Shown in pieces: positions 5,964 through 59,400 of a stretch of 64,000 nucleotides of DNA. Made by a program: the position numbers and the translations under genes. How positions within the stretch are numbered: position 1 is the stretch's first letter; every line of letters begins with the position of its first letter. A model generated the notes under the pieces. It was not told the origin of the DNA. It made no database searches and worked only from the letters and a program-made list of their open reading frames with translations. The DNA is from Macrostomum lignano (taxonomy: Eukaryota), in contig NIVC01001877.1 in NCBI GenBank assembly GCA_002269645.1, positions 1-64,000 on the forward strand, read 5' to 3'.

Positions 5964-5964
5964 G

Positions 5965-15155: not shown

Positions 15156-15192
15156 TACACAGACAGACACACAGACATACACAGACAGACAC

Positions 15193-15223
<31 letters not shown>

Positions 15224-15236
15224 CACAGACAGACAC

Positions 15237-15267
<31 letters not shown>

Positions 15268-18625: not shown

Positions 18626-19065
18626 GGTTCATAAAGGGCACCAAGTTACATAGGGTCATAAAGGGCACCAATTTACATAGGGTCATAAAGGGCACCAAGA
18701 TACATAGGGTCATAAAGGGCACCAATTTACATAGGGTCATAAAGGGCACCGAGTTACATAGGGTCATAAAGGGCACCAACATACATAGGGTCATAAAGGG
18801 CACCAAGCTACAGAGGGTCATAAAGGGCACCAAGCTACAGAGGGTCATAAAGGGCACCAAGCTACATAGGGTCATAAAGGGCACCGAGTTACATAGGGTC
18901 ATAAAGGGCACCAAGCTACAGAGGGTCATAAAGGGCACCAAGCTACAGAGGGTCATAAAGGGCACCAAGCTACAGAGGGTCATAAAGGGCACCAAGCTAC
19001 AGAGGGTCATAAAGGGCACCAAGCTACAGAGGGTCATAAAGGGCACCAAGATACATAGAGGGCAC
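18626..19065. repeat. 27-bp minisatellite (gggtcataaagggcaccaagctacaga)
   Basis: About 16 tandem copies directly abutting the 28-bp array. Confidence 0.97.
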
Positions 19066-19177
19066 ACAAATCTTCAAAATTAGGTGCTTTTTATAACTTT
19101 TTTATACTACAGGGGACTAAAGAATACTGTTGAATCATTCTGAACTGTTAAAAGCACCGAGTTTTATCGCAATAAGT

Positions 19178-24451: not shown

Positions 24452-24934
24452 GTAGTACTGTGCATGCACACAAATTCTTTATTCGATAAAATTACATGTA
24501 TATAAAAGTATATATAAGGCCGAATCAAAGTTCACTAATTAATATAGCATTGGATTTTTGTCATGCAAGTCACGCGCTGTCAACATCCGGGTGCGCGCGG
24601 CACTCATTCCATACGAATTTGCGTCACAAAATTGAAAAAAGTTTCACGTGCGCGGCAACTCTGCAGTCTGCTTTGAAAAGCAATTCAGAATTGACTGCAT
24701 TTCAATTTATCTATCATATTATCTAAGCAATTCTGGATACGATGAGACAGAGGGCAAGTTGACTTTGTACCCACCAGACAGGCTTATCCACTATATATTA
24801 TCCACTTCTATGCTAGTACAGTACAAGTACAAGTATGTCCGCTTGGCTCTAAGAAAGTGTGTCCTGTGTCCTGAACTTCTAAAACAATGTGTGTGTCCAC
24901 CTAGGCCTTAAGAGTGTCCACAACTTAAAGACAA

Positions 24935-26470
24935 GCATGTCCACCTCAAGGACGGTCTATCCACATCAAGGACAGTCTATCCACATCAAGGACAGTCTAT
25001 CCACCTCAAGGACAGTCTGTCCACCCCAAGGAAAGTCTATCCACCTCAAGGACAGTCTATCCACCTCAAGGACAGTCTGTCCACCTCAAGGACAGTCTGT
25101 CCACCTCAAGGACAGTCTATCCACCTCAAGGACAGTCTGTCCACCTCAAGGACAGTCTATCCACATCAAGGACAGTCTATCCACATCAAGGACAGTCTAT
25201 CCACATCAAGGACAGTCTATCCACATCAAGGACAGTCTATCCACATCAAGGACAGTCTATCCACGCCAAGGACAGTCTGTCCACCCCAAGGACAGTCTAT
25301 CCACATCAAGGGAAGTCTATCCACATCAAAGACACTCTATCCACATCAAGGACAGTCTATCCACATCAAGGACAGTCTATCCACATCAAGGGCAGTCTAT
25401 CCACCTCAAGGACAGTCTATCCACCCCAAGGACAGTCTATCCACCTCAAGGACAGTCTATCCACATCAAGGGAAGTCTATCCACTTCAAAGACAGTCTAT
25501 CCACATCAAGGACAGTCTATCCACATCAAGGGCAGTCTATCCACCTCAAGGACAGTCTATCCACCCCAAGGGCAGTCTATCCACATCAAGGACAGTCTAT
25601 CCACATCAAGGGCAGTCTATCCACATCAAGGGAAGTCTATCCACATCAAGGACAGTCTATCCACATCAAGGACAGTCTATCCACATCAAGGGCAGTCTAT
25701 CCACCTCAAGGACAGTCTATCCACATCAAGGAAAGTCTATCCACATCAAGGACAGTCTATCCACATCAAGGACAGTCTATCCACATCAAGGACAGTCTAT
25801 CCACATCAAGGACAGTCTATCCACATCAAGGACAGTCTATCCACATCAAAGACAGTCTATCCACATCAAGGACAGTCTATCCACATCAAGGACAGTCTAT
25901 CCACATCAAGGACAGTCTGTCCACCCCAAGGACAGTCTATCCACATCAAGGACAGTCTATCCACATCAAGGACAGTCTATCCACATCAAGGACAGTCTAT
26001 CCACATCAAGGACAGTCTATCCACATCAAGGACAGTCTATCCACATCAAGGACAGTCTATCCACATCAAGGACAGTCTATCCACATCAAGGACAGTCTAT
26101 CCACATCAAGGACAGTCTATCCACATCAAGGACAGTCTATCCACATCAAGGACAGTCTATAATCCACATCAAGGACAGTCTATCCACATCAAGGACAGTC
26201 TAACCACCTCAAGGAGAGTCTATCCACATCAAGGACAGTCTATCCACATCAAGGACAGTCTATAATCCACATCAAGGACAGTAGGACAGTCTATCCACAT
26301 CAAGGACAGTCTATCCACATCAAAGACAGTCTATCCACATCAAGGGCAGTCTATCCACATCAAAGACAGTCTAACCACCCCAAGGACAGTCTAACCACCT
26401 CAAGGAGAGTCTATATATCTCAAGCTCAACCTATCCATCTCAAGGACAGTCTATCCATCTCAAAGACAAC
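24935..26470. repeat. 20-bp minisatellite (ccacatcaaggacagtctat), about 75 copies
   Basis: Directly visible; it explains ORF 24889-26265. Confidence 0.98.
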
Positions 26471-27467
26471 CTGTAAATCTCAACTGCAAATACAAATACA
26501 TGGTACTTATCGTACATTTAATTAATTTTTTGCACGTTCATTGCGTATTTTCGATTGTTACATGTTTGAAAGGACGGTGTCATAACACTTTTATAGCTAA
26601 AAATGAAACTGAGGGGATTGAGAGCAACACACAGGCATATGCAGTATACATGTATACTTTATAGTGCCACTGGAAACCATAAATAGGCAAATTTCTCTCT
26701 TCTTTTTCCAATGCAGAAAAGCGCAATTAGGCAAGCCATGCTTACAAACTACATGCACAGAATATTGTTGAGTATGGCTCAAACATCTGGAGCCTCAAGG
26801 CCGGCTTAGCCTGAAGAAGTCACGGCCAACTCAGTTCGCAATAAACTTTGACGACAACCAATAGGGAAACGGGGATTCAACTGACCGTGAGGCGTGAGAA
26901 GGCATTGATAATAATAAGACTAAAAACTTTCTTACCGAAAGAAATCAAGGTTGAGTTTGTTTCTTTGAATATCTTCTCAGCTATTTTCTACAATATTTCC
27001 TAGATTGTAAGTCTACCAATTTAATTTGCTTTACTTTTAGAAACTTTGTGTTTAAACTGTTGAACTAAATCTGTAGCGTTAAGCCAACATATTGACGGCT
27101 ATAGAGTTAGTATCGTGCTAATAACTTCCTGTTTATGCAAGCCTGGAGAGCTTATTATAGCCAACACTGGGTCGTTTCGTTAAAATACGAGCGCAACCCG
27201 TGCAGTCCGTTGACATATCTAGAAGCAGTCTATAGGCCTACATGTGTCTAGAGACAGTCCACAGGTATAGACACAGACAATAGAGACGGCCTGGATCTCT
27301 AGAGACTAATATCTACAGATATCTCTGCATGTATAGATAAGAATCTAGAGACAATCAACTGAGATCTCCAGACACTCTATAGATACTGTTCCATAGAGTC
27401 AGTCAGAACCTGTGCTCATCTCCCTGACAATCAGCTCCACTCGCAAGAAGCTGTCTCCAGAGTCAAA

Positions 27468-30400
27468 ATGGAACGCGACCAGACGCACGACGACTTGACG
27501 AGTCAGCCGAGCTTCGAAGAGACCACCAGCAGCGTCGCCGGCTCCTGCACCGACGATGCCACGGCGTCTGAAGCTACTGTCGGCGACGCTGAAGCCATCG
27601 CTGAGTCGCGCGCCGCCCTGGCCGATTCGCTAGAGGCGCTGCGGAATCGTCGCGACGCGCTCGACAGAATCCGCGCCGCAGCCGAGGTTCAACGCCGCGA
27701 AGTGTTGGATCAAATCGAGCGCAGCTTCCAAATGATCGAACGGGTGCTGAGGACGAGGAAAGCTCGATTAGGCGAGACTCTGGACGAACTGTTGACAGCG
27801 CGAACGGAAGCGGCGCACAAAGAGGCAGCTCAGATTGCCGGCTTCGATGACGAGATGACGGCCGCGCTGAAGCGTCTGGACGGCATGAACGGCCGGTTGG
27901 ATCCAAAGACGGGCCGGGCGGAACTTCGAGGCTACGCCAAGCTAGCAAAGAATAAGCCGAAAGCATATCCGAGCGAGGACGACTCGATCTCGTACTATCC
28001 AACCGATTTGGACCAGGTGAGATTCTTCCTGACGAGATTCCCCGACGAGATTCTCCCGACGAGATTCTTCCGACGAGATTCCCGGGAAGATATTTTCCCG
28101 ACGAGATTCCTCCGACGAGATTTCCGGGAAGATATTGTCTCGACGAGATTCTTCCGACGAGATTCCCGGGAAGATATTTTCCCGACGAGATTCTTCCGAT
28201 GAGATTCCCGGGAAGATAATTTCCCGACGAGATTCTTCCGACGAGATTCCCCCAATGAGATTTGGCAATTTGCACCCCAGGGACTCGAAAATCTAGCTCC
28301 TCGAGTTTATTGCAGTGTGCATGTAGGAAGCCAGATCTTGCAAAAACCCCTTACAAAAACTGACGATTTTTTCCTGCCTCCGGACGGAGAATGACAAAAA
28401 ACAATGTGGTGCACCATATTGCGTGGTGTGATTTCTCATAGTCAGATTACACAGTGTGGATTGACCCTCATCGGTGGTTTTGAGTCGCCCGACAAGCCCC
28501 ATAATTAAGTGTGGCTGCGATCAGAAACGATTCACGCAGCAAGAGTGAATGCTTCTGATTTGCAGACGGTAAATACGCGTTTACCGACGCGCTGCTCTGT
28601 GTCCTACGAGCGTAGTTTCAATATCAGTGCTACTAATCTGGATTTCTAGCTCAGAGCTCTAATATGTACCTAATCGCAGAATGGTGGAACTTGGAGCTTA
28701 TGGGTTCGGAGTTTCGGAGACCTGACGTCTTTCTTCTCCCCTCCTGGTCAGGTGTTCAGCCATATTCATCGAGCCGGCCTAGTTGCGATGGGCAGCGTTG
28801 AGGCCTTGAACTCGACGTTGGAAAACGAGCACGATCTGCGGTCGTGCACTATACGCGAGGAGCACCAGGTGACGGTTGTGCCGCGCGACTATCGAAACCG
28901 CAAAGTGGATCCCAGCGTCCTCGGCTCTCTAAATTGCGTCGCCAGCCTTGCCTCGCCATTTGAAAAGTCCCACTTTGTCGCCGTCATGCAGGATAAAAAC
29001 ACAGTGAAGGTGCGCTTCCAGCTAGAAGAGGAGGGCACCTTTGAGCTGAGCGTGAAGATGCTGGGCGAGCACATTCACGGCTCGCCATTCACCGTGAGGG
29101 CGGTCAGTCGAACCGACGGAGGAGCCAGTGGTGGCGGCGGCGGCTCTGGTCACTACGCAAACTCTGGCGGCGGAGCTGCGGGCAGGAGACGAAGCTCCCT
29201 CCGACCAGGAGAACGTAGCGGCACCGGTCGCCTCATGCCTCACTCGATAGCTGTTGGCGGCGGTGGCTCCGGGGGCGGCGGTTCCGGCGCTGGCACCGCG
29301 TCTTCGTCTAAACTTAGCAGCACCAATAGGCGACCATTGAGTCGAACGTCGCGGCAGAGTCTTCAGGTGAGATGAGAACTTGCTTGCTTCGTTATTTCTC
29401 TCTGACCTGTCGAGTCTTAAGTTGTTTTTAATGACTATCGGTTTTTCTTAAAGTACATACAAGAAAACTAATGTGCACGAAGATTGAGGAGTGCGCTCAA
29501 AGTTATGATTGTTGCTCGATGTTGAGGAGAGTGCTTAAGGTGATGATTATTGCCTGATGTTGAGGAGAGTGCTCAAGGTGATGGTTGTTGCTCGATGTTG
29601 AGGAAAGTGTACAAGATCATGATTGTTGCTTTATACTGAGGAGAGTGTTAAAGGTGATGATTTTTGTTTGATATTAAAGAGAGTGCTCAAGGTGATGATT
29701 GTCTTAATGTTACTACTACATGTAAATGCGACAAGTGACGGTTAAAAACATTAGGCTTTATCGAATGAGTTAAGCCAATACTCATCTCAAAACTCCAGGT
29801 TGAAGACGACATGGTGCAGAAGGTTGGCAGTCGCGGTCGCGGCCACGGAGAATTCAACAATCCGCAGGGCCTGTGCGTCACACGAGAGGGTCGCATAGTC
29901 GTTGCCGATTCAAACAACGCCAACGTGCAGGTGTTCGGCTCTGGAGGGGAATTTCTCGCCCGTTTCGGCTTGCGCGGCCGCGACCCCGGCCAGGTTCAGA
30001 GGCCGATTGGCGTGGCCGAGACAGCCACGGGCAGTTACTTGGTTAGCGACTTCGACAGTCGCTGCATCCACGTGTTCAGTCCGGACGGTAAATACTTGTC
30101 AAAGTTTGGCGGCAACCGGCTCGCGGGTCCAAAAGGCATCGCGGTGCTATCAGACGGTCGCATTGCCGTTGTCGACAACAAAGCCTGCAGCGTGCTGCTG
30201 TTCAAGCACACCGGCAAGCTGGTGCACAAGTTCGGCAGCCGCGGCACCGGCGACGACCAATTCGCTGGTCCGCACTACGTCGCCATCAACTCCAAGGACC
30301 AGATGATTGTGTCGGATTTTCACAATCATTGCGTAAAGATTTTCGACAGTCTGGGCCAATTTCAGTTTTGCATCGGCTGCGCGGGCAGCGAGGCCGGCAG

Positions 30401-31599
30401 GTTAAACGCGCCGACTGGGGTGGCTGTGGACCTGCAGGACAACATCATGGTGGCGGACTGGGGCAGCTCGTCTATCCAGGTAAATTTGCTGTAATAGAGG
30501 CTATAGAGGTTGAATGAGTTTACCTTACAAACTAGCTCCTTTGGGGATGAAGCATGAAGTTCAAGCATTGCAATAAGACTTTCACTACCAAAAAGTCGTA
30601 TTACGTTTTTATTGCTCGTAGGAGAACCTCCTACACGTGCCTTGCTTTAACATCAATTCTTAGCATCTGAGCAGTTCAGCATCAAGTCTCAGCAACTGAG
30701 CAGTTCAGCATCAAGTCTCAGCAACTGAGCAGTTCAGCATCAAGTCTCAGCAACTGAGCAGTTCAGCATCAAGTCTCAGCAACTGAGCAGTTCAGCATCA
30801 AGTCTCAGCATCTGAGCAGTTCAGCATCAAGTCTCAGCAACTGAGCAGTTCAGCATCAAGTCTCAGCAACTGAGCAGTTCAGCATCAAGTCTCAGCAACT
30901 GAGCAGTTCAGCATCAAGTCTCAGCAACTGAGCAGTTCAGCATCAAGTCTCAGCAACTGAGCAGTTCAGCATCAAGTCTTGTAGAATATCTTAGCAGTTT
31001 ATCATGAAGCTTTGGCATCTCATCTGAGCAGTTTACCATGAAGCTTTGGCATCTCATCTGAGCAGTTTACCATGAAGCTTTGGCATCTCATCTGAGCAGT
31101 TTACCATGAAGCTTTGGCATCTCATCTGAGCAGTTTACCATGAAGCTTTGGCATCTCATCTGAGCAGTTTACCATGAAGCTTTGGCATCTCATCTGAGCA
31201 GTTTACCATGAAGCTTTGGCATCTCATCTGAGCAGTTTACCATGAAGCTTTGGCATCTCATCTGAGCAGTTTACCATGAAGCTTTGGCATCTAAGAAATT
31301 AGGCCCCTCAAACCTATCAGTCTGGAGAACTTCCTCATATGAACCACTGACATCTGAGCAGATTTCAATAGCCTTGCCACTTGTAGCGTGATTGCAATTT
31401 ATAAATAAATAAAATAAATAAGACTGTGCACTGACCCGCAGGTGTTCAACAGCGAAGGCAGCTTCTTGGCCTCAGTGAACACAGCCGGAGACCAGCTGTA
31501 TGGGCCTCAAGGCCTGGCTTACTGCACCAAAGCCAACCAATTGGTGGGGTTGTTGACACAGGAAATCACTGCTTCAAGGTTTACAAGTGTCCCGTGTAA
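27468..31599 (+). CDS. TRIM2/TRIM3-like coiled-coil + filamin + NHL-repeat protein; exons 27468-28016, 28752-29366, 29799-30479, 31442-31599 (1-nt deletion near 31546)
   Basis: Coiled coil, filamin repeat (EGTFELSVKMLGEHIHGSPF) and NHL repeats close to TRIM2/3 (VVDNKACSV, FAGPH, DFHNHCVK, NAPTGVAVD, DWG, LYGPQGLA, DTGNHCFKVY). All introns are phase 0 GT-AG. No RING or B-box was found. Confidence 0.88.
28017..28255. repeat. cccgacgagatt-type degenerate tandem repeat at the start of TRIM-NHL intron 1
   Basis: Begins immediately at the GT donor. Confidence 0.85.
29490..29700. repeat. Degenerate about 38-bp repeat (gatgttgaggagagtgctcaaggtgatgattgtt) in TRIM-NHL intron 2
   Basis: Five to six diverged copies. 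Confidence 0.8.
30665..30980. repeat. 29-bp minisatellite (ctgagcagttcagcatcaagtctcagcaa)
   Basis: About 11 copies in TRIM-NHL intron 3. Confidence 0.96.
31005..31292. repeat. 34-bp minisatellite (ctgagcagtttaccatgaagctttggcatctcat)
   Basis: About 8 copies adjacent to the 29-bp array. Confidence 0.96.
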
Positions 31600-38035: not shown

Positions 38036-39340
38036 ATGGCTCTGCTACGAAATCTCTCAGCCGTTCTTACTGTTCTTGCTGTCTGTTTCTTCTGCAACAG
38101 CTATGGTTGGGTGGACCACCAGGCTAACGTGATACAGTACTTGAAGAACAACATCACCAATTACAGTCCCCTGCTCCTGCCCAAGGTGGAGCCGAAAGCT
38201 AAAATTGCTGTCAGGATGGACACTCTGCTAACCCACATTACTGCGGTCGACACGGCGAAGCAGACGATACGTGTAAGCGCATTGCTTCAAGGAAAATGGG
38301 AAGAGGAGCGGCTGGTTTGGAATTCGAGCAAATTCGGTAATGTTACCGTTATTAATTGGAAAGTTGATGAAATCTGGAGCCCTTTGATTTTGATGTACAA
38401 CGGTGTAGGACAGGATCAGGTGCTGCAATCAAAAACGCCAGTTTTCCTAACGTCGCGATCACCCAACTTAACCCAAGTCACGGCTCTATGGCGTCGCGAG
38501 TTCGAATTCACGTGCAAGTTTGACGTAAGCCAGTTTCCCGTGGACATGCACGACTGCTCTATATCATTCTGCTTCATCGATCCTGAACGGAACAATTCTG
38601 TGGTACAACCTGAGGTCAACAAACTGTTTCCGTATAACCCGCTAGTTCTATACCAAAATAGCAGCGAATGGACACTTCTGAACTTCTCCACGTCTGCAGA
38701 GTTCAAGGAGTACGCTCTGGTTCAAGGTTCGAGAAAGGCGCTGCTTCCAACGTACGAATTAAGGCTTCAGATCTGTCGAGTATCAAATTATTACTTCGTG
38801 AACATCATTGCACCGCTCATTTTGTTGTCTGTTCTTCAAGTGCTGGTGTACTTTGTGCCACTGGAGTCCGGTGAGAAGCTGGGATTCGGCATCACAATCA
38901 TGCTCAGCTACACTGTGTTCCTGCTGCTCCTGGACGGCATTCTACCAAAGTCACAAAAGCTGCCATTTGTAGCATATTTCATCACGTCTGCGATGATTCT
39001 GTCCACAGGATCTCTCCTACTGACTTCTTTGACAATGCGACTTCACCTCACGCCTGGAGATGATGGAATGCCAACCTGCCTTAGAGTCGTTCTCGTCCGG
39101 TTTCTAGGCCGTCTGCTGTGCGTGAAAGGTAGCGACGCGACGGTTCGGACGGAAAATAGCGACAATAGCCGGACCAACGTTAGAAAAGTGGATGAAGACG
39201 CCAGCCGGATTCAATCGGATTGGACGGTGGCAACAAAGTCTGTCGAGCGGCTGATGGTAGCTCTGGGTGTTGCAGCCACAGCCGCCCTGCTGGGTGGCCT
39301 CATCATCAAGCCCTACTGGGGTTCGCCGCACAAATGCTGA
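38036..39340 (+). CDS. Intronless Cys-loop ligand-gated ion channel subunit 1 (nAChR-like, non-alpha, cation pore), 434 aa
   Basis: Signal peptide, WxP..YN, Cys loop CKFDVSQFPVDMHDC, M1-M4, and M2 GEKLGFGITIMLSYTVFLLLL. Single open frame. Confidence 0.95.
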   Translation: MALLRNLSAVLTVLAVCFFCNSYGWVDHQANVIQYLKNNITNYSPLLLPKVEPKAKIAVRMDTLLTHITAVDTAKQTIRVSALLQGKWEEERLVWNSSKFGNVTVINWKVDEIWSPLILMYNGVGQDQVLQSKTPVFLTSRSPNLTQVTALWRREFEFTCKFDVSQFPVDMHDCSISFCFIDPERNNSVVQPEVNKLFPYNPLVLYQNSSEWTLLNFSTSAEFKEYALVQGSRKALLPTYELRLQICRVSNYYFVNIIAPLILLSVLQVLVYFVPLESGEKLGFGITIMLSYTVFLLLLDGILPKSQKLPFVAYFITSAMILSTGSLLLTSLTMRLHLTPGDDGMPTCLRVVLVRFLGRLLCVKGSDATVRTENSDNSRTNVRKVDEDASRIQSDWTVATKSVERLMVALGVAATAALLGGLIIKPYWGSPHKC

Positions 39341-40147
39341 CTTGGATTTGCACTTTTGCAGCTAACAGTTGCACTGAAGGTCACATCTTTCTCTGTTTTT
39401 GAGGATCCAGCGCGAGAAAATGCGCATCACGCATCATTATTCTAAAAGAAACAATTTATTAGAAATCTATTTATATTTTTGCCTAATAAGGCACTACTGC
39501 TATCTGCTACATTTTCTGCACACCAGTACTTCTTCTGTCTGAATAATCTTCAATATAACGATAATGTCACCAAAAAGACAAGTTAGCAAAAAAAATTTTT
39601 TGCTACAATGAGTAGTTTAGAATGTTTGATAAAGCAAGTAACGTAATTGAGTCAATAAAGAAAAGGGCCGTTGTTAATCTGCGATGAGATCGGTTAGTGG
39701 GCTTGGCTTTCCGTCCGACAAACCCTCATCATTCTTACCTGCTCATTGCTGCGACAGCGAAACAATTAATGATGGTTAATTGAAAGGCACTAGAACGGCC
39801 ACTGAAATAGGTTTGGGCATCAATCATGGCTTCCATTTTTTCATCTGAATTGATTATTAATCAGCTCGTCTACATGTATATGATTGTGCGCGACCGTTTG
39901 CTTGATTTCCCTATTCAAATCAATCAATCACTTTGTATAGTTGTTACCTCTCAGGTAGGCATTGTGTTAGAAGCACCACTCAAATGTGCATGCTGTATGT
40001 GCGTGACTCCCGTGAGAAGCCACACAGCTAGCCAATCAATTTCATACAAACCCTTTGTTTGGACAGACTCCATATTTATAACAAAAGTAGGCTGAATTTC
40101 TCTTGAGAACCGAGGCATACCAAAGCAGAACTAGCTGACAGTCAAAC

Positions 40148-41452
40148 ATGAAACCAACTCTGTTTGCTATTTTCGTCACACTATTGCTGACAGCGGCTGG
40201 TGTCCAGGGACAGCAGGACTTCGAGGGTGAACTTGACACGTATTTAAAGAACAACATCAGCTATTTCAGTCCGAATCTGTTGCCAAGAATTAACAAGGAC
40301 AAGGTCATTCAAATCGTAATGGACTCGCTTCTGTGTCAGATTGTGTCTGTGGACACGGCAAAGCAGAGCATAAAAATATCAGCAATCATTCAGGCTGTGT
40401 GGGAGGAGGATCGACTGGTTTGGGATCCGAAGAAGTTTGGCGGCGTGAAAGTGATTAACCGGGACGCGTCAGAGATCTGGTTTCCCGTCATAATAGTTTA
40501 TAATGGAATCGGAGATGGGCAGCTCCTTGAGCCGCAGATGCCGGTAGATCTTTTGTCGACAACAGTGAACAGTACGCAAGTTACTGCAATGTGGCGTCGC
40601 GAGTTCGAATTCGCCTGCCAATTTGACGTGTCAAAATTCCCTTGGGATCAGCACGACTGCGAGTTGGAGTTCTTCTTCAGCGACCAGGGGCACGGAAATT
40701 CGATGGTTATTCCAATAGCGAAGACCAATTACCCATTCAATATAAAGGCGCTATACACAGAGAGCAGCGAGTGGACATTAGTGAATGCATCCTCAAAAGC
40801 TGAATATAGGGCTTACAATTTGATTCGCGGAGTAGCTGCGAAGCAAATGCTCCCATCTTATATCATCAAGGTGCAGTTTAAAAGAGTTTCAACGTACTAT
40901 TTGATAAGCGTAATCACTCCGCTGTTGCTGTTGACTCTGCTTCAAGTGCTGGTGTACTTTGTACCACTCGAATCCGGCGAGAAACTGGGATTCGGCATCA
41001 CAATCATGCTCAGTTATACCGTGTTTCTGCTGCTTCTGGACGGCATCCTGCCGAAGTCGCAGTCAACACCAGCTATTGCATCGTTCATCACGTCTGCCAT
41101 GATCCTGTCAACGGTGTCACTGCTGTTAACTTCGCTAATCATGCGATTTCACTACGCTCCGGAGGGCACCAAGATGCCCGCATGCGCCCGAGGCTTCTTT
41201 GTCCGATTCCTTGGACGCGTGTTCTGCGTGAACGGCTCGTCCAGTGCGCAGGTCGGTGAGACTCCGACTGCTGACGCAGCGGCAAGCGAGTCCAGTGTGC
41301 GCAAGATGGACGACTCAGCTCCCGTGGTGAAGTCGGAATGGATTGTGGCTTCCTACGCGATTGAGAGGCTGATGGTGGGTCTGGGAGTTTTCGCCACAGC
41401 TGCAATCATCGGAGTGTTTGTTTTGAAACCCATGATTCAAAATCAAGACTAA
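40148..41452 (+). CDS. Intronless Cys-loop ligand-gated ion channel subunit 2, 434 aa
   Basis: Signal peptide, Cys loop CQFDVSKFPWDQHDC, four TM helices, same M2 as subunit 1. Confidence 0.95.
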   Translation: MKPTLFAIFVTLLLTAAGVQGQQDFEGELDTYLKNNISYFSPNLLPRINKDKVIQIVMDSLLCQIVSVDTAKQSIKISAIIQAVWEEDRLVWDPKKFGGVKVINRDASEIWFPVIIVYNGIGDGQLLEPQMPVDLLSTTVNSTQVTAMWRREFEFACQFDVSKFPWDQHDCELEFFFSDQGHGNSMVIPIAKTNYPFNIKALYTESSEWTLVNASSKAEYRAYNLIRGVAAKQMLPSYIIKVQFKRVSTYYLISVITPLLLLTLLQVLVYFVPLESGEKLGFGITIMLSYTVFLLLLDGILPKSQSTPAIASFITSAMILSTVSLLLTSLIMRFHYAPEGTKMPACARGFFVRFLGRVFCVNGSSSAQVGETPTADAAASESSVRKMDDSAPVVKSEWIVASYAIERLMVGLGVFATAAIIGVFVLKPMIQNQD

Positions 41453-42579
41453 GCTGTATACGAGCGTAAGAAGAATCTAAAACTGCGCAATGGATTTAGG
41501 ACTGTCTGCTTAAATAATCTTGTTTGAAATTTAACCCATTGCTAACTCAAGAATGAGCCTATTTTTTAAATATTGTTTTGATCTTTTTCGAAACATTTTC
41601 AGTAGATTCGGTCGATAAATAAAGTTTACTAGATTTCAACTTGCACTCTCGCTGTACTCCTTGTCCACCCAAGAAATGCTTATGATCTCAGCTGCACGCA
41701 ATTATGCTTTATCCAGATAAACCCTCTTGAACATTATATTTTCGTTAGCTAGATATAAATGTTGTCGCAACGCCTCACCCAAAAAACGAGACGTAGCTAA
41801 ACTGTTAAAAAATTAAAAATAAACTAGTCATATCACAGCAATTTAAATCTTTGAATTAGTACGTTCGCTATTTTAGAAATAAGACAAAAGCTACATTCTG
41901 GTGACGCTTCTTGCAGCCCTGTTACGCTGCCATCTAAGGACTCGGACATTTGCTGTTGTTGTTGTTTTGACTTCTCGTATCCAGTGGGGAATACCCCGAG
42001 AAAAACAAACAAACCAAACTTGCCAAGTACTTGGTAAGTCAACAATGCAACCTCGTGGCAAGTATCGCCTAAGTACTTTTCAAGTTTTCCAAGTTTATAT
42101 TCGATAGGTACTTTATAAGTACGAGTATGCAATGTTTTCTTAAGTCACTTCTTAAGTACTTTCCAAGTACTTGGATGTAGACAGTTCATGATAATGATAC
42201 TTCCCAAACTTGGTAAGTCAAAAATGTCAACCAAGCACATGTACATGATTGCTGACTTGGGAAGTTTGGCATGTTTTTTCCCGGGACGAGTACATACCAT
42301 TCCTGAATTATTTTACCGTAGTTGTCTAGGGACAAATAAATAGCTCTCTCGATAGACCTAGCGATATTAAGGGAAAATATTGGATATAGCCTAATAAAAT
42401 ATTTGAATGTAAATAATGTCAACCGTTATTTAATACTTTATATTAAGCTTCATTTATATGTCTGCTATGCCTCAGGATTCATTTGTTCTGTATGATAAAG
42501 TACAGTGACTCAGTTCTTTATGTTTATCGTCTAATGTGCTCCATTACTTCTTTAGATATTTATTTAACAGAAATACGTG

Positions 42580-42975
42580 CTCCATTTCTTCACACCCGCT
42601 CCTGGCAAGAGCAGCTTTCCTTGCCCACCATCTGGCGCTGACTGCCAGCCTCTCGGAGCCAAGGGACATGGCCAGGCTGCACTCTGCCTCAATCCCAGAG
42701 TCTGCCGCCTTTTTTACCTGTCTGCCAAGCAGCCGCGAGGTCACGCGCCTCTCGGACATTGAGCTGTCCATCTCTTGCCGCTTCGATGACGCCACGGTGG
42801 CAGCTTTCGAGCGCGGGCAGCCGTTGCTTGGGACGCGACTATATCACGCACACCTGCTTCCCAAGTCACCTGCATGCCTCTACCGTCCGCCCACAGCGCA
42901 GCTGCCACCTCGGTCGAGGCCCGCAAATCGGCCAAGTGCACCGACCTAGGCGACCACCACGCATTCCGCCCGGTC
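42580..42975 (+). mobile_element. Internally deleted, frameshifted CRE-type non-LTR retrotransposon fragment (restriction-like endonuclease region)
   Basis: Reads ARLHSASIPESAAFFTCLPSS..RLSD, then RGQPL-WDAT...AA..EARKSAK..LGDHHAFRPVG, resembling CRE-clade C-terminal motifs recalled from memory. Confidence 0.6.
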
Positions 42976-43326
42976 GGTAACGATCGGTATAATTGTTATT
43001 TCTAAACCATTTCTGCTCTTTTTTCTTCAACATCTAACACAGATTTATCCATTAAGCTTGCACGAGCTATATTCCATAGCTTTGCTGAGAAAGGAATATT
43101 ATTAATCAAACTAAATAATTTATCAGAGACTCATCAAATATCTCGGTAGTAATTTAATGACACTGGCGCTGCATTACGTTCTTGTGTCAATAGCGATAAA
43201 AGCCGTCTCTATCTGTCCAATAAAATAAAAGCAGCGAACGGATTCTCAGGCGATCTTTGAGCCTAACCTGTAACTGGTCGGGCTGAAACGGCATTAGGAC
43301 TATTTTAGCAGACATACCAGTTGTCT

Positions 43327-44643
43327 ATGCGATCAGCAATGCACTGCAGAATGAGACAAAAAATGTTATTCTCGTTCATCCTGCTGGTTTCGGTCTTAGC
43401 CTCGACACTAGCTACTGATTACGATGTCCTGCTAATGCAGCACCTGAACAACAAAGTTGCAAACTACAGCCAATTTATTTTGCCAATACTAAACAAGACA
43501 AACAAAGTCAACGTGTCGTTAGACATCATGGTCAGCCATTTAGTCTCAGTGGACACTGCCAAGCAGAACATCAAAATCGCTGCCTACGTTCAAGTCAGCT
43601 GGGAAGAGGAGCGACTCGTGTGGAATCCTGCCGACTTTGGTGGCGTCAGTTCTACTAGCTGGGACCCTGCAAAAATTTGGTACCCAATCATCATGACATA
43701 CAACGGTAACGGCGATGAACAGATTCTGATTCCTCGAATCCGACTTACACTGATGTCTAAGAGTTCAAGCGTGACGACGGTTACTTCATCCTGGCGCCGG
43801 GAGTTCGAATTTTTTTGCCAATTCAACATGTCCGACTTTCCGTACGACCAGCACACTTGCGAGCTGCTGTTCTTCCTTGCAACTGACGCCAATCCTGATG
43901 CAGTGCGGCCTGTTCGCAGCGCAATGCCCATGCGGGTGACAGGAATCTACAAGCCTAGCAACGAGTGGATATTGAAAAATGCAGTAGCAGATTGGGAAAC
44001 CAAAAAATATTTTATAATCGAAGGACACAATGAGACCGAACTTTCGACCTTTGTTCTGCGATTGCACTTGAAGCGAGTGTCAACGTACTATTTCATCAAC
44101 ATCATCACGCCTTTGTTGCTCCTAACTTTGCTTCAAGTGCTAGTGTACTTTCTGCCCCTGGAGTCCGGTGAGAAGCTGGGATTCGGCATCACAATCATGC
44201 TCAGCTACACCGTGTTCTTGCTGCTTCTGGACGGAATCCTGCCGAAGTCGCACAAGATGCCCGCCATCGCCCTGTTCATCACGGCCGCCATGATGCTGTC
44301 TACCGTGTCGCTGCTGCTGACATCGCTGGTCATGCTGTTCCACTTCAGACCGGAGGGCAGCCGCATGCCGAAATGCGCTCGGACGGTCTTTGTTCGATGC
44401 CTGGGCCGCCTTCTCTGCGTCAGCGGCGCCACAGCGTCACAGGTGGGCCAGCAGAATCCGGCTGAGGCTGAGGGCGACGGCGACGGAGTTCAGAAACCGC
44501 CTGCAGCGGAACAGAAATCGGTCGGTTCAGACTGGGTGGTGGCCGCCCGCGCGATCGAGAGATTCTTGTCGCTGTTCGGAGTGGTTGCTACCGCCGTCAT
44601 AATTGTAGTCTTTCTGATGGGGCCGTATCTTCAGTTTTCTTAA
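43327..44643 (+). CDS. Intronless Cys-loop ligand-gated ion channel subunit 3 (start may be 43351 or 43363)
   Basis: Signal peptide, Cys loop CQFNMSDFPYDQHTC, four TM helices, same M2 as subunits 1 and 2. Confidence 0.95.
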   Translation: MRSAMHCRMRQKMLFSFILLVSVLASTLATDYDVLLMQHLNNKVANYSQFILPILNKTNKVNVSLDIMVSHLVSVDTAKQNIKIAAYVQVSWEEERLVWNPADFGGVSSTSWDPAKIWYPIIMTYNGNGDEQILIPRIRLTLMSKSSSVTTVTSSWRREFEFFCQFNMSDFPYDQHTCELLFFLATDANPDAVRPVRSAMPMRVTGIYKPSNEWILKNAVADWETKKYFIIEGHNETELSTFVLRLHLKRVSTYYFINIITPLLLLTLLQVLVYFLPLESGEKLGFGITIMLSYTVFLLLLDGILPKSHKMPAIALFITAAMMLSTVSLLLTSLVMLFHFRPEGSRMPKCARTVFVRCLGRLLCVSGATASQVGQQNPAEAEGDGDGVQKPPAAEQKSVGSDWVVAARAIERFLSLFGVVATAVIIVVFLMGPYLQFS

Positions 44644-45387
44644 TGAAACTTGACTAACTGAGATTTGAAAGCTTATGAAAGGCATTGACATTCTATTGAC
44701 TACCCTATTCATTGATACTGTTTGCAGTGGTTTTTGTTTTATTTTCTGAATTGGATTTCTGGGAATTTTTTGGCTCTGAAATTTAGGAAGCAGGCATTGA
44801 TCCCCGGGCTTACTTGGGCAGTGAGGTGACTAGATAGATCTGTAGTGAAAGATGCGCGATCTTTTTTTTTCATACACAGGCTAATGCCAACTGCGGAAGG
44901 GCTTGAATAAACCAAAGTAACTAGTCACCGTTGCCATTGGATACGCACTAGTCAAGCGCTAAATGCAGGCACTGGAAATAGGCTCGGCGTTTTGCTAATG
45001 CAATTAACGTTTGGGCAAATATTTGAATAGCGAGCCATGCGGCCCGTTCATCCAGTTGCCATGGGTGGGTGCTAAACCTGCTTCAGTTGCAGAGTAAACA
45101 GTCTGTATTTCAGCGAGAGCAGAAATCAAATGTGTAATTAACTTAGCTCGATCCAATTCTTCCTAGCTAGTTAATTAACGGTAGCTAGGAGAGGAAAGCT
45201 TAAGTGCTCTCCCTATAACTGCTCTTCTGCAATTCTAAGGCAATTCTGCCCATTCCGCCGACTCCTAAGCACATAATTTTTTTTTATTAGAAGCAGGGGG
45301 GTTGTGTGCACCCTGGCGCACTTTAAGCGACATTGGCACACAACCGGCGAGAGGCGTTACTGCCCATTCCGCCGACTCCCCTGAGCA

Positions 45388-45637
45388 GGCACACAAGCGC
45401 GCGGATACGTACGCAGGCACACACTCACACAGGAGTGTACAGCGGCCCTAACTTTATTTTATCGTTAGGCATGTACATTTCACTGCGCCTTGGGGGGTTG
45501 GCTCTCAAGGCCGTTAATTGCACGAGCAGAGCCAAGCCGAGATTCCAATTCAGCCCCAAATTAATGCGACTGCACTTGGAATCGAGCCTGGGTCGCTGGC
45601 ACACCAGAGCCTGCGCTAGACCGCTGGGCTACGGCCC
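45388..45637 (-). mobile_element. tRNA-derived SINE
   Basis: Minus-strand head GGGCCGTAGCCCAGCGG..GGCTCGATTCC, followed by the core shared with 34149-34433. Confidence 0.7.
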
Positions 45638-45647
45638 ACTCAACCAA

Positions 45648-45882
45648 GCACACACAAGCGCGCCAATACTGTAAGCAGGCACGCACTCGTGCACACGCTC
45701 ACACAGGGCCCCTTTTTGACTTTCTAATCGTCAGGGGATGCACACTCTCTGCGCCTTGGGGTTAGGCCCTCATGTGGGCGAGAATCGCAGGACAACCCCT
45801 TGGGCCAACTTTCGTGCACAGGCCCGATATGCATGCGGGCCGCGTACGGAATCGAACCAGTCACGTGGAGCGAGAGTCTACC
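45648..45882 (-). mobile_element. tRNA-derived SINE with 5'-truncated head, tandem to the previous copy
   Basis: B-box GGTTCGATTCC; the core tttgactttctaatcgtc..acactctctgcgccttgg is nearly identical to 34235-34280. Confidence 0.7.
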
Positions 45883-46775
45883 GAAATCTTCGGGACTTTA
45901 GAGCCTTCCGAACTGGCAAAAGAAATCGGCCAGAATTCGAAATCAAATCAGAATTCAAGCTTCCATTTAAACTCGTACTGTTAAAAAAATTATCCCTTAA
46001 AAAAGTTTTTTTGAGGGCAGAGAAGCAGGAATTACAGATCCAAATTGTATGTGTAACATGTAAATATTAGACAGGCGAATTATAATTACATCAATTTTTT
46101 CCAGAAAAAACATGAATAGCTACAAAAAATTCGTAAAAATACATTTTAGAGCTACAAAGTCCGAAGTCCATGAGATTTTCGTGCAGTGCATTTAGCCGTG
46201 TGCCAGATTTTGTCTGAATCGCGTTGGCCCCCAATTCTTTGTGAGTCTTACTAAAGAGAGATTCACCCACTAAAAACGTTCCGGTAGTGACTGCATATTA
46301 AATTCATGCTTTTGTTGTGGGAGAGGTTTTCATTTCTATATACATGTAGGGGTACATTTACATCGGTCAGCCATCAATACATGCATATACCATGTCGCCT
46401 TGTTCCCTATAGCTCTTTTCTAAGAATCGATGGCAATTATTGGGCTCATACATGTTGGTCTTAATACCACCTTTTCCACACAATGACGTTTCCTTATCGA
46501 CTGTTTAATTCCACGGTCGGAGCACGAAAGCGGCCTGATGCAAACACCAATGTGGGGGAACGAGGCACGCAAGCCCCATAAAACCCTGTAGACTTGGGAC
46601 AATAAAAACGAATTTTAAGGGAAAAGCGATCGCCATTATGAATAAAGATAAAAGAAACCACAGAAGATAAAAAATTGGCTCTGCGCAAACAGACAAGGCG
46701 AGCCAACACAACGCGAGAAGACCTTAAAACCAGATCGGGGGGAGGTGGATGCGCACGGGGCAGAGGGACGAGAGA

Positions 46776-47100
46776 GAGTCGCAAAAGTGGCAAAAGTTGC
46801 CTGCCATCGCCCTGTTCATCACGGCCGCCATGGTGCTGTCCACCGTGTCGCTGCTGCTGACATCGCTGGTCATGCTGTTCCACTTCAGGCTGGAGGGCAG
46901 CCGCATGCCGGGATGTACTCGGGCTGTCTTTGTTCGATGCCTGGTGGGCCGACTGCTCTGCGTCAGTACCGTAACGTCACCACGTCACCAACGTCACCAC
47001 GATTCGGACATGAGTCGTCGCGGCACGCGCAATTGAGCGGATTATTTCGCTGTTCGGAGTGGTTGCTACTGCTGCCATCATCGGCTTGTTTTTACTGTAG
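46776..47100 (+). pseudogene. Truncated fourth Cys-loop receptor copy (M3 to M4 only), closest to subunit 3
   Basis: PAIALFITAAMVLSTVSLLLTSLVMLFHFRLEGSRMP, then after a frameshift RAIERIISLFGVVATAAII. No extracellular domain, M1 or M2 is seen upstream. Confidence 0.88.
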
Positions 47101-48797: not shown

Positions 48798-51700
48798 ATG
48801 CCTCTTTTCGGTAAGAAAAAGAAAGATGGCAATAAAGAAAGCCCTACGCACGCTCAGCCTTCCCGCGATGCAACACAAACTTCAAATGCAACCCACAAAC
48901 AAGCTGGTGCAGTACCAGGAAGTGCAGATGAAAGCCCAGAGTCGCAAAGGCCACAATATAATTTTCATTGTCAACTGGCTCATGGAAGCCCCACAGGAAT
49001 AATTAGTGGCTTTACAAACGTCAAAGAACTTTATGCAAAGATTGCAGAGTGTTATAACATCGAACCTTCTGAGGTAATTCTGATATCAATTTTCTTATGT
49101 TGTTATGATATCTTTAAATTGCTTCCTTGAATTATGGATGAAAATAATTTTTTTACCTAATATTTCTATTTAAAACAGTAGTTTTGTGGTTTAGGATAAA
49201 AACAAAAGCTTTCACTTGCTTTCTTTGCTCTTCTCTAATTTTATTTTGTGCTTTTTTACCCTAGACAGGGAATTAAATATTATTAATATTATTATTAATA
49301 AGTATTTAATTCATTAATTTATAAATATGTTTATTAATAAAAGTATAATTAGTAACAAAAAAAAGTTTATAATGTTTTTTTCTAAAAACCTTTAAGAAAA
49401 TAGGCCTAGGTTTTTGAAACTTAGTTTAAATTTTCTTCTTATAATTTTTTATGCTTTTAGTTTTGATAATATCAACTTTAAATAAAAAGTGATTATATAA
49501 AAGCCACACTTTAAAGGTTACTCACTGTTACTGGTACACAGGAAATTTCTGGCATATGTTGTAGGGCTCTTTCTTCTCTGGTTAATAATCCCACTGCTTA
49601 GCTACCAAGTTGTCGTGGGGGAGGGGAGTTTATCCTTTTGCTGACACCAAATTGTTACAGGGTTTACCGGGGATTTTAGGGAGTTTCTCAGGATTTGGGG
49701 CGAACTGCACAATTTATACTACTAACAGGAGTAAGCCATAGGTTGTTCCTGGTGGCGTGGTGTGTCCGAGCGGCAAGACACAATTTCCTATTCTTAGTCC
49801 GGGGAATATAGATGGGAGAGGAAATTAACGGCTTCGCGATGGATCAGAGTTACCTGGGAAAATTGCACTAATGGGGAATTTCTAAACACTAATAGGGAAT
49901 GCTGACATGAGTAGACTGACCGTATAATACAGCATTAGATAAGAAGGCAATCTGCCTAATGAATGTGGGAAATTTCTACAAGGAAGGGTTGGGGGCGGGG
50001 ATGCCGGGGGAGACTGTACGTCTGAGGGAATAAGGCTGTACACCTGAGCAGACAGACTGTCCACTAGAAAGGGGGAGGGGCAGGAGCGGCGGGTGCAAGT
50101 TCCGCTGGGAGAAAGGGAAGAGGCAAAACTTGGGGGTAGGACCGAACGTCCCGGGGAAGGGGAGAGAAGTTTTAAACACTTCTAACTGTACAAGCTTCGC
50201 AGGAGAAGAAAGGCGGAACGCCTTTAAATGACTAAGACGGAGCTATTTTTAGAACAATGTTCAGTTACAACTGCTAAATAACTAGACTAGCGGAGGTCTC
50301 AGCAAACGAAGCAGGAAGTTATTTTCTTTCTTGATATATTTTCTTGCTTATATAGGATTTGCTAACAAAATGGCGGACGCATTTAAACTAATAAAGCACT
50401 AGATTATACGGTAGGCCACTAATCGAAACTAATAATTACTACTAATGATATAAAATATTTATTTATGTAGGCACTGATAATTTCTTGTAGTTTTAGAAAA
50501 ATAGTCGTATTTATATGTGAAATCAATGGACAAAATAGACAAAATTAGGCAAATAGGCAAAATAATAGGCAACTGTTACACATACTAGTGAATAGTTTAA
50601 CTGTTTTTGCATAAACCACTTTGGCATACCACTTTCAACTCAAGTAAATTTTTGGCACACAAACTTATACTCATCAAAACTTCAAAACTTTTATAAATAC
50701 AAAATTACATGTTGCAATAATTTTATTCTTTTAAATTACATGCACTATGAAATTTGAAAAAAAACTTTATTTTTATGTACAATTGTTACAAATTTTGGCT
50801 TTTTCCAAATTTTATAGGAAAGTTTTTAGCAAAGTCAATAGCATTTTATTTCAAATTTCATAGCCACAAATATGGTTTTTTATTGTCACAATTGCAAAAA
50901 GGTCCTTTATTGTTTTATTAATTTTTTACCATATTATTACAAAAGAGTCTTTTTTCTAGTATACCATGCTGTACCATCTAAACTATAGTATAAAAGCTTT
51001 TATATTTATTAAAATAGTTAGTGATTCATTGCATTTATTCAATTTATAGATTATGAATTCATAACCTTTGAAATTAAGCTTCTGTAATAATCATATATTT
51101 TTGTTATAGTTTTAAACATTTTGCTTCACTGAATAACCATTTTCTTTTTGTGTATATATTGAGTTCATTCTGCATGACATTAGCTATCCTTGCCTATCAA
51201 AATCTTTGCTATCTCTTTATATTATAGAAATTATTCCTTAATCATGCTGCCTAATCATTATTAGTATAAATCTATCAGTAGAACTTACCTCTTCATTTTA
51301 ATGTGTATAGAAAATACAAATCTTATCATTACTAGTAGTAACATGATGATAAAGTGAATATTATTATTAGGAACTAAATATTTTGTTCCATATATTTGTA
51401 ATTGTCCCTGTAGTATAATATTTTTGTGTAAAATATTGTCAGCATTTTCAATAAGTTTACCATAAAATACAGGCAAATATACCAAGAGGAAAGTCAACCC
51501 TCGTGCAGGCTATAACTTGTGCTGCCTTGTCATTAGGCATCAGTGCCGCCTATATTCTTAAAATAGCAGTTGAGTTAGCCTTATTCATTTTGAGACATGC
51601 AGTCTCCTCCCTCTCCCTTCCTATTGAAAGCATATTGCCTTCTTACCCTACTAGGCTTATTATTCCTATATTAGGCATCTTGCCTCCTTACCCTACTAGG

Positions 51701-57267: not shown

Positions 57268-57655
57268 AAAGGGCGTCGCCACGGGGGGCATGTCCCCCCC
57301 CCATAGTAAAAACTATGGGGGGACATGCCAATGCTTTGTCCACCCCACCCCACCTTGTGACCTGTTATGAAAGTCAATAATTTTGCTTCAGAGCGACAAA
57401 ATGAGTGCCTGCGGTACCAAAATGAGTGCCTGCGGTACCAAAATGAGTGCTTGCGGTGCCAAAATGAGTGCCTGCGGTACCAAAATGAGTGCCTGCGGTG
57501 CCAAAATGAGTGCTTGCGGTACCAAAATGAGTGCTTGCGGTGCCAAAATGAGTGCTTGCGGCGCCAAAATTATGTACATGCATGAATTTAATCATGTAAA
57601 TGTAGAATTCTTGGCTTTGCCCCCCCCCACTATAAAATCCATGGCAACGCCCCTG
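57268..57655 (+). mobile_element. hAT-like MITE with an internal 21-bp tandem array
   Basis: Ends aaagggcgtcgcc / ggcaacgcccctg are imperfect inverted repeats; the flanking 8-mers gcattcac / gcatgtac match at 6 of 8; internal unit aaaatgagtgcctgcggtacc. Confidence 0.7.
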
Positions 57656-58149
57656 GCATGTACTCAACAATACTTCTATATTTGTTGTTTGGTTTTTTAT
57701 GTTAGTTGCTTATATCGTGTGGGCACAGTTTTTGTGCATCAATTTTTCTTGCTGCTCTTTCTACACAATAATATACTGAGATTATACAGTTAAACGGAAG
57801 CACTTTCCATATTAGTGGAATAAACTGCAAATCTATTAAGGAATTTATAAAAAAGATCACTATAGAAAATGGGTTTATTTTTCTACAATTCATGATTGCA
57901 ATGATTGCATGGATGAAATGACAGAAGCTGAGAGAACAATTGAAGAGCTGGGAGACACATGTCTGCGCGTACCCCACAACTTGACGGTCCTTCTGGCCAT
58001 GCGCACCATATGCATGCGTATTGTAACATTTACAAATTTAACGAATTCAATTGCGTGCCAGGGTGCATGGGCCTAATTAAAAGATGGACCCTCGCAGCTT
58101 GGACGGCCTGACACCACCAACCAGGAGAAAGTTGTTGCTGTTGACAAGC

Positions 58150-59400
58150 TCCTTGTTGGATTGAAAAATCTGTGTCAAAGTTCTAATTTCAGCGTCAAGC
58201 GTTATTCATGTACTACAAACTGAGTACGCGCGATGCAGCATGCACTTAATCAGACCAATCTTCCACTGTGTAGGACAAAGGGCATTGAAATTAAGGATTA
58301 GGCCAGTAAATGTTGGTTTTCGGTAAACATTTGTGCTGACGCAGCCATTGTTCAAGTCGACTTCAGTGTCAAGAAACGGTATTCTTTTTCCTCCGCAGTT
58401 TCGACAGTGAATTTGATTCTTTTGTGTGTTGAATTTAGTGCTTGAAGAAATTCCAGATATTTGGCTTGGTTATCAAACACAGCAAACGTATCACCGACGT
58501 AGTACCGCTTGTAGAAAGCAGGGGCGCAGTCAAGCGCCATCCATTTCTTTTCCCAGTGAGCCATACAAATATTTGCGAGTGTTGGAGCAAGAGGCTAGGA
58601 CTCCCCATCGCACATCCATCAATTTGGCGGTAGTATAGTTGCCTTCAAATATGAAAATTCCTGAGGTTGCATAGCCCAAGAGTTTTTTAAAGACTTCTCT
58701 AGGCATTGAGGTGGATTGGATTGATACACCTGCTCAGTGGCCAGATCGATGGCTAGCTTTAAAGGGATATTGGTGAAGAGTAGTGAAGTGACATCAAAGC
58801 TGCACACAAAGTCGGCGTGACTCGGCTTGAACTGATTGAGCGCCTGCAGAAATTCCGAGTTGGACCGAACTAAAAATTCACCAGATATGCAAGGCTTGAT
58901 CAGAGAATCAATTAATTTAGCAAGTTCATATTCAGCAGTGTTCATCATTGAGATAATTGGCCTCAGGGGCTTATCTTCCTTATGCACTTTACACAGCCCC
59001 AAACAATATAGTTGATCTGGCTGACTCCCACTTTTGGCATATACGTTTGAATACTTCTTCACTTAGATGATTCTTGGCATGGGTTCTCAGATAAGTCTGT
59101 AACAATCTTTCGGCCTTAAGCACGGGGTGGGCCATGGTATAACTCCATTCACGTCATTTAAGCGTTGGAATCTAGTCTCATGGTCATTAATGATCCCAAA
59201 AAGTTTGTTGACATAGTCATCCGTGTCCATAACCAGCAACACCATATCCTTTATCATAGCCAACAATCTTGATCCTCTTATTATCCCGAAGCTGTTTCAT
59301 TGTCCGATGAAACAGCTTCGGGATGAAACAGCAGCAAGAGCATGTTTCATTGCTCTTGCTGCTTCATACTTGACTTTACAACGAGAACCCAGCGACGAAT
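58150..59400 (-). mobile_element. Degenerate Penelope-like element, reverse transcriptase region
   Basis: Minus strand reads DKG..VMD..DY, KVHKEDKPLRPIIS, SFDVTSLLFTNIP, GCAMGSP, RYYVGDTF (corrupted YVDD), IKFTVE, PFLD, VYRKPTFTG and HRAYSVCS, with several frameshifts and stops. Confidence 0.9.

Follow-up and report, generated by a model that had tools for sequence, protein, structure and literature searches.

A tandem array of single-exon nicotinic-like channel genes in Macrostomum lignano belongs to a lineage-restricted family of putative orphan cation-type subunits

In molluscs and annelids, genes for nicotinic acetylcholine receptor (nAChR) subunits have expanded into intronless tandem arrays through retroposition and tandem duplication (Jiao et al. 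2019, PMC6896357); that study reports intronless nAChRs for molluscs only, and it sampled no flatworm. The chemotactile receptors (CRs) of cephalopods (van Giesen 2020, Allard 2023, and Kang 2023, as reported in PMC11526382 and PMC10338036) are also nAChR-derived, intronless and clustered, lack the motifs for binding acetylcholine (ACh), and are predicted to conduct cations non-selectively, with a binding pocket that varies and a channel that is conserved. The spiralian orphan Alpo4 from Alvinella pompejana (PDB 8bx5, PMC10338036) has no vicinal disulfide and responds to neither ACh nor serotonin. Among flatworms, the nAChR-like SmACC subunits of schistosomes have a non-canonical function as ACh-gated chloride channels, according to PMC10728431. 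Here we compare these systems with an array of Cys-loop receptor genes in the flatworm Macrostomum lignano. The window that was analyzed is a stretch of 64,000 nucleotides (assembly GCA_002269645.1, contig NIVC01001877.1, positions 1 to 64,000 of the forward strand), and the array consists of three genes, here called g1, g2 and g3, and one truncated copy. The genes resemble the mollusc and annelid expansions, as described in PMC6896357 and PMC13174522, in being single-exon, tandem and lineage-specific with substituted ACh-coordinating positions, and they resemble the CRs in the properties listed above. As read from their sequences, they are part of a M. lignano radiation of nicotinic-derived orphan subunits of predicted cation type. 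The family belongs to a known kind, the divergent nAChR-like expansions of spiralians, and the genes themselves are apparently undescribed; a literature search on Macrostomum found no earlier description of the family.

A preliminary description of the window, made from its sequence, had reported three intact single-exon Cys-loop genes and one truncated copy within 9 kb of a candidate flatworm family. The open reading frames (ORFs), Pfam and blastn agree on this gene content (Table 1), and the flatworm origin is correct, since the window is from M. lignano. Each of the three predicted proteins contains the Neur_chan_LBD and Neur_chan_memb domains above the curated Pfam cutoffs, begins with a signal-peptide-like N-terminus, and ends with an M4 helix, the full-length ORF running from signal peptide to M4 in a single exon. 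A poly(A) signal (AATAAA) is found 166-314 nt past the stop codon in all three genes. The intergenic spacing is 807 bp between g1 and g2, 1874 bp between g2 and g3, and 2141 bp between g3 and the fragment. The fragment corresponds to g3 codons 307-431 and carries an internal deletion and a frameshift; it is 89.6% identical to nucleotides 919-1097 of g3 across 182 bp (blastn), and in two frames it aligns to g3 residues 307-386 and 404-431 (tblastn). The intact ORFs of the three genes, together with ratios of nonsynonymous to synonymous substitution (omega) of 0.1-0.4, rule out pseudogenes or retrocopy debris as their identity.

Residue calls for the three proteins were made by alignment to human alpha7. 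The preliminary reading that they lack the ACh-binding apparatus was borne out at every position it named. There is no vicinal Cys pair (alpha7 Cys190-Cys191), and in g1/g2/g3 loop B Trp149 is replaced by I/S/A, loop D Trp55 by L/I/Y, and loop A Asp89 by L/V/I, while loop C Tyr195 (Tyr198 in Torpedo numbering) is L in all three. The M3-M4 intracellular loop is short, as proposed, at about 60 amino acids. Loop C, which had been put at about 3 residues longer, measured 4-5 residues longer than that of alpha7. Family-wide statistics were computed for 30 unique full-length proteins, which cluster into 12 types at 90% identity out of a total of approximately 20 suggested by the match tables. The vicinal Cys pair is replaced by L, V, I or F across 12/12 types, and Trp149, Trp55 and Tyr195 are missing from 12/12, so that the aromatic cage characteristic of an agonist-binding subunit is absent. 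All 12 keep Tyr93 of loop A and have an aromatic residue where alpha7 has Tyr188. Judging from these substitutions, the cholinergic cage is gone from both faces of the binding site. This differs from Alpo4, which keeps the aromatic cage (loop B Trp159, loop D Trp65, and loop C Tyr residues; PMC10338036), whereas the flatworm family has lost both Trp; Alpo4 is also an isolated gene, and the flatworm family a tandem radiation.

The channel part of the proteins follows a different pattern. The cation-type M2 with GEK, 9' Leu and 13' Val described earlier was recovered in g1, g2 and g3, and it matches the M2 pattern of alpha7. The M2 sequence is ESGEKLGFGITIMLSYTVFLLLLDG, with -1' Glu, 9' Leu, 13' Val and 19' Asp, the pattern of cation channels without Pro-Ala-Arg, and ESGEK...L9'...V13' is invariant family-wide. 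The family is therefore predicted to be cation-selective. An anion channel of the SmACC type is excluded by an M2 that begins with SGEK and has no Pro-Ala-Arg; the SmACCs are gated by ACh (PMC10728431), and the M. lignano family has no ACh-binding residues. The Cys-loop residues C157/C171, F164, P165 and D167 are invariant in 26/26 family members, as expected for the superfamily. Other invariant positions of the extracellular domain (ECD) are the beta1-beta2 loop VSVDxxxQ, the Cys-loop FPxD, the WRREFEF signature, and the pre-M1 Arg. Taken from these conserved motifs, the gating machinery looks intact.

Sequence and structural comparisons place g2 close to nAChR subunits. Among solved structures, human alpha7 matches g2 best (E 3.5e-40, 24-26% identity), followed by other nAChR subunits, with 5-HT3A, ACR-23 and Alpo4 (E 8.9e-26) scoring below them. 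An AlphaFold2 (AF2) model of g2 has a confidence (pLDDT) of 73.9, a beta-sandwich ECD, and transmembrane helices at residues 250-269, 278-300, 308-335 and 397-431. The top Foldseek matches of this model are alpha7, alpha4beta2 and muscle nAChR, with probability 1.00, TM-scores of 0.67-0.87 and 20-26% identity; alpha7 is the best structural match (TM-score 0.67-0.78). CR chains were absent from the best 60 PDB sequence matches of g2 and of a gastropod neighbor, and from the top 50 structural PDB matches.

A genome-wide paralog count had been proposed as a check on the family. Used as queries against the genome, g2 and a paralog 45% identical to it returned the same closed set of approximately 95-101 matches, which is a lineage-restricted radiation. 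The majority of these matches are full length within one open frame; from the match tables, about 60 copies are intact, and the remainder have stops or are fragments. The array in the window is found nearly identical on contigs C1903 and C59 and at 94-95% identity on C2468, C4838, C60 and C4953, a recurrence that fits a neopolyploid, partly uncollapsed assembly. Larger family arrays lie on C305 (404-460 kb), C3662, C3985, C2468 and C4536. The g1 copy on C1903 (L044:6430-7754) is frameshifted, and a g1-like copy on C2468 (L028, C2468:43673-44926) has an in-frame TAA. The g1 copies in the window and on C59 are intact, so the damage on C1903 and C2468 is either differential decay of duplicates or assembly error. 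Within the array, g1, g2 and g3 are old paralogs, with ECDs 40-50% identical and saturated synonymous sites, and the type closest to g3 is L015 on another contig (74% amino acid identity).

The family has few representatives in protein databases. The UniRef entry A0A1I8GG98 from M. lignano is a fragment 98% identical to g2, and g1, g3 and four paralogs had no entry in the protein collection searched. The g2 sequence was also looked up for exact matches in public assemblies other than those of this genome, including transcript-derived contigs, and gave none. Against 1.84 billion representative proteins, a profile built from 26 members identified only three clusters belonging to the family, one named M. 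lignano and two 95-96% identical to genes of this genome; no ortholog outside M. lignano was found in this search. A tier of matches at 200-335 bits was considered as a source of closer relatives and rejected. The members checked were fused multi-copy models from bivalves, Owenia and Glandiceps and one UniRef entry, whose high scores arise because several receptor units are summed. The gene models from bivalves, Owenia and Glandiceps in this tier (P0011-P0020) are 800-1200 amino acids long with 2-5 complete nAChR-like units each, and are probably tandem single-exon genes merged by automatic annotation.

In maximum-likelihood trees, the family is monophyletic with support of 100/100 and a stem of 1.47 substitutions per site. 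It groups with divergent nAChR-like subunits from Haliotis, Patella, Elysia, Ruditapes, Lineus, Lingula and Owenia, a grouping of 26 rows with moderate support (94/94), apart from the alpha7-type clade. Long branches call for caution over this placement, and the trees single out no sister group. There is no one-to-one orthology to any characterized subunit. Most of the spiralian neighbors also have no Cys pair, yet they keep Trp149 and Asp89. The flatworm family differs from the mollusc and annelid expansions in belonging to another phylum, in its very long stem, and in having neither the loop B Trp nor the loop A Asp that most of these neighbors keep. The CR clade is reported as predominantly cephalopod (PMC13174522), whereas the flatworm family is restricted to M. 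lignano, its named neighbors being gastropod, bivalve, nemertean, brachiopod and annelid in a tree built without CR sequences. Residue calls, genome search and trees together uphold the description of these genes as tandem, lineage-restricted orphan nAChR-like subunits without the ACh-binding apparatus.

Two parts of the preliminary description were weakened. It had set the single-exon structure of the array against the introns of every other gene in the window, but this structure is no special mark of the clade. A Pfam scan of the genome for the ligand-binding domain (LBD) listed 130 matches outside the family, and 73 of the 130 listed hold the whole LBD in one frame, 49 of them in open frames of at least 380 amino acids and 28 in open frames of at least 430. 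Some of these genes keep the loop B Trp. For example, L053 is a complete single-ORF subunit that keeps both the loop B and the loop D Trp, and L051 and L052 keep the loop B Trp. Intron loss in the Cys-loop superfamily seems to be general in M. lignano. A long (SL)n repeat opens the frame of L052 (L052:806-2212), in which no Met precedes the LBD; probably, either a separate exon further upstream encodes its signal peptide or the start was assembled wrongly. Furthermore, the array had been likened to the cephalopod CRs as a convergent system. The expansions described in PMC6896357 and the grouping in the trees make it another instance of a known spiralian pattern and no unique parallel to the CRs.

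The genes of the family, including g1, g2 and g3, are constrained, functional genes under purifying selection. Pairwise omega is 0.1-0.4 in the ECD and 0-0.15 in M1-M3. Evolution of the proteins is modular: the ECDs diverge, with loops B, C, D and F changing most rapidly, and M1-M3 are nearly identical. Across the 12 types, Shannon entropy was 1.95 bits in loop C, 1.77 in loop F, 1.76 in loop D and 1.71 in loop B, against 1.35 in the ECD framework and 0.45 in M1-M3. The ratio of nonsynonymous to synonymous differences per site (pN/pS), pooled over nine recent, independent pairs, gave the same order: 0.37 in the binding loops and 0.43 in loops B, C and F; the framework had 0.22 (Fisher p = 0.014 and 0.005), and the transmembrane domain (TMD) had 0.09. 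Entropy and pN/pS agree that the binding loops are the fastest-evolving parts. The corresponding property reported for the CRs is diversifying selection at pocket sites; here, the pooled loop values, obtained without site models, are raised over the framework and stay below 1.

In several pairs of genes the pore module is uniform at the nucleotide level as well. Between L026 and L050 (L050:539-1864), nucleotide identity in the ECD is 42-72% (27-57% at third codon positions) and rises to 96-100% (93-100% at third positions) from just ahead of M1, near g2 residue 237, to the start of the intracellular loop. Similarly, g3 and L015 are 91-99% identical in nucleotides from M1 to the C-terminus, and g3 and L031, on another contig, are 97-99% identical over g2 positions 268-343 with saturated ECDs. 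This jump in identity between ECD and TMD indicates that the pore module was homogenized by gene conversion or recombination between paralogs, also across contigs. An older signal of the same kind is seen among g1, g2 and g3, where blastn aligns M1-M3 at 77-79% and elsewhere finds only short, weak ECD matches. Third-position identity among the three is 60-77% in M1-M3 and 30-40% in the ECD, and synonymous divergence (dS) is about 1 in the TMD and above 2.6 in the ECD, although this low TMD dS could partly reflect codon or nucleotide constraint in place of conversion. The available text of PMC6896357 and PMC13174522 makes no mention that we found of pore-module conversion in the mollusc and annelid expansions.

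Overall, these genes are best explained as orphan cation-selective channels of nicotinic descent that are lineage-restricted and modular, and we consider this explanation probable. The family grew via tandem duplication, with neopolyploidy then multiplying the copies and loss continuing in a process of birth and death. Each subunit would contribute a different, largely aliphatic or aromatic pocket on a common pore, and the channels may open to non-cholinergic small molecules. Subunits may co-assemble, which is plausible because the transmembrane interfaces are interchangeable and the pore module is uniform. As for the kind of ligand, external cues and endogenous transmitters or modulators each deserve tentative consideration, and what remains falls to silent or accessory subunits or to other stimuli.

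Detection of external compounds was the function put forward in the preliminary description. The proteins would be ionotropic chemoreceptors in epidermal or rostral sensory cells, an independent counterpart of the cephalopod CRs and the ionotropic receptors (IRs) of arthropods; this is a reasonable hypothesis resting on analogy, and we regard it as possible but far from established. Lineage restriction, the number of types, birth and death, and loop variability favor an environment-facing role: the family has no orthologs, its roughly 20 types sit in tandem arrays with pseudogenes and fragments that indicate birth and death, aliphatic or aromatic side chains stand where cation-pi residues were lost, the binding loops change fastest, and homogenization of the pore leaves the ECDs distinct. 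The CRs share the intronless tandem organization, the absence of ACh motifs, and non-selective cation conduction (PMC11526382, PMC10338036). Sensory expression, gating by hydrophobic molecules, and reported diversifying selection at the pocket set the CRs apart from the flatworm family, whose ligands and sensory role are hypothetical.

Several observations weigh against a chemosensory role. Variability of loops C and F is common to most Cys-loop families and is therefore weak evidence of ligand diversification. The pN/pS ratio is below 1 in every region, so that relaxed constraint accounts for the loop pattern equally well as diversifying selection. Intronlessness is not distinctive, because it is common among the other Cys-loop genes of M. 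lignano. The 800 bp upstream regions showed no enrichment of the X-box (RFX) motif, with 1 strict match upstream against 4 downstream, and no 8-10-mer common to the 12 types beyond shuffled controls. In addition, expression of the bivalve expansions, whose genomic features match, is reported from embryos, from the gonad and under stress, without specificity for sense organs (PMC6896357), and the annelid orphan Alpo4 is still without a ligand despite extensive screening (PMC10338036). A stronger version holds that Macrostomum has its own ionotropic chemoreceptor repertoire, independent of the cephalopod CRs, in which some 20 ECDs would share one pore that conversion keeps uniform, allowing free mixing into heteromers; this version is rather doubtful.

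Alternatively, the genes may encode receptors for endogenous transmitters or modulators other than ACh, such as amines, betaine, choline-like compounds, peptides or lipids, acting in neurons or muscle like the LGC/ACR channels of nematodes. This, too, we can propose only tentatively. It would account for gating machinery and a cation pore that are intact and strongly constrained, and for the loop A Tyr and loop C aromatic residue kept in all types; nAChR-derived channels for other ligands do exist, and the PDB matches of g2 include the betaine receptor ACR-23. On the other hand, approximately 20 divergent ECD types exceed what a handful of ligands would need, the profile search found no orthologs outside M. 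lignano whereas transmitter receptors are usually conserved, and loop B has no aromatic residue, although most amine-gated Cys-loop receptors use one there.

It is unlikely that the proteins lack their own ligand site and serve as structural, accessory or silent subunits, influencing how other nicotinic receptors assemble or traffic or drifting as largely redundant copies after polyploidization. The loss of key residues on both faces of the binding site would fit such a role, and it counts against the orphan-channel explanation in that subunits binding no ligand would also be expected to lose the cage. Recent polyploid duplication accounts for many of the copies, of which several are already pseudogenes, and a loop pN/pS that is raised but below 1 fits relaxed constraint. 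However, the M2 and TMD of the family differ from those of L051-L053, the three other Cys-loop genes examined, which argues for assembly within the family; an ECD omega of 0.1-0.4 means that the LBD is still constrained; and old paralogs with saturated dS are still intact.

Outside the array, the other genes of the window are locally consistent with the earlier statement that each of them has introns, as the WD40, RING-IBR, filamin/NHL and GIPC genes are each split across several ORFs (Table 1). The mean for the M. lignano genome is about 5 introns per gene, and simple or tandem repeats make up 15% of it (PMC5730564). The DNA of the WD40 gene is unusually GC-rich (63-66%), and its ORFs overlap at 3774-4161, which suggests a short intron or a frameshift there. 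An ORF on the reverse strand (58619-59062) looks by eye like a fragment of a reverse transcriptase or retroelement, with no Pfam match at E <= 0.001. Long minisatellite or low-complexity arrays are present at 1-1500, 9090-9800, 10140-10830, 12400-15630, 15880-16480, 18570-19080, 24880-26530 and 57370-57710, and the long ORFs that they produce in several frames are spurious. Skew is extreme over the first 2 kb of the window (GC 0.73, AT 0.65).

Table 1 Coordinates of the Cys-loop array and neighboring genes in the 64,000-nucleotide window
Feature	Position	Strand	Evidence or remark
g1, intact single-exon Cys-loop subunit gene, 434 amino acids	38036..39340	+	ORF; Pfam LBD 8.3e-25, transmembrane region 2.5e-19
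g2, intact single-exon Cys-loop subunit gene, 434 amino acids	40148..41452	+	ORF; Pfam
g3, intact single-exon Cys-loop subunit gene, 438 amino acids	43327..44643	+	ORF; Pfam
Truncated g3-like pseudogene fragment, M3 to M4	46785..47097	+	blastn, tblastn, ORF listing
g1 channel module M1-M3	38789..39046	+	M2 at 38867-38953; 80-81% amino acid identity to g2/g3, ECD 40-50%
g2 channel module M1-M3	40895..41152	+	M2 at 40973-41059, ESGEKLGFGITIMLSYTVFLLLLDGILPKS
g3 channel module M1-M3	44086..44343	+	M2 at 44164-44250
Cys-loop (C-x13-C with FPxD)	g2 40616..40660; g1 38513-38557; g3 43816-43860	+	Sequence
Family signature WRREFEF, just ahead of the g2 Cys-loop	40592-40612	+	
WD40-repeat gene, weak GEMI5 TPR match	2095-6633	+	Three long ORFs in different frames
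RING/IBR (RBR-type) ubiquitin ligase	19178-20838	-	Several ORFs
Filamin-repeat and NHL-repeat protein, TRIM-NHL-like	27363-30494	+	Several ORFs
GIPC homolog, first exon	48798-49130	+	Gene split over several ORFs

If these genes encode functional non-cholinergic receptors, they add a flatworm case to the repeated repurposing of nicotinic-type receptors by spiralians. The ECD/TMD mosaic illustrates cleanly how a ligand-gated channel has evolved by modules in nature, and it suggests natural chimera boundaries for receptor engineering. In situ hybridization and RNA interference are routine in M. lignano. Transgenesis is also established in this species (PMC5730564), and the orphan-receptor question, which has stalled for Alpo4 and the bivalve expansions, is directly testable there. 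Should the subunits prove to be silent or accessory, they would represent a routine gene-family expansion in a neopolyploid genome. If the chemoreceptor reading were true, the family would be a third independent recruitment of neurotransmitter-gated channels to chemosensation, after the IRs of arthropods and other protostomes and the CRs of cephalopods.

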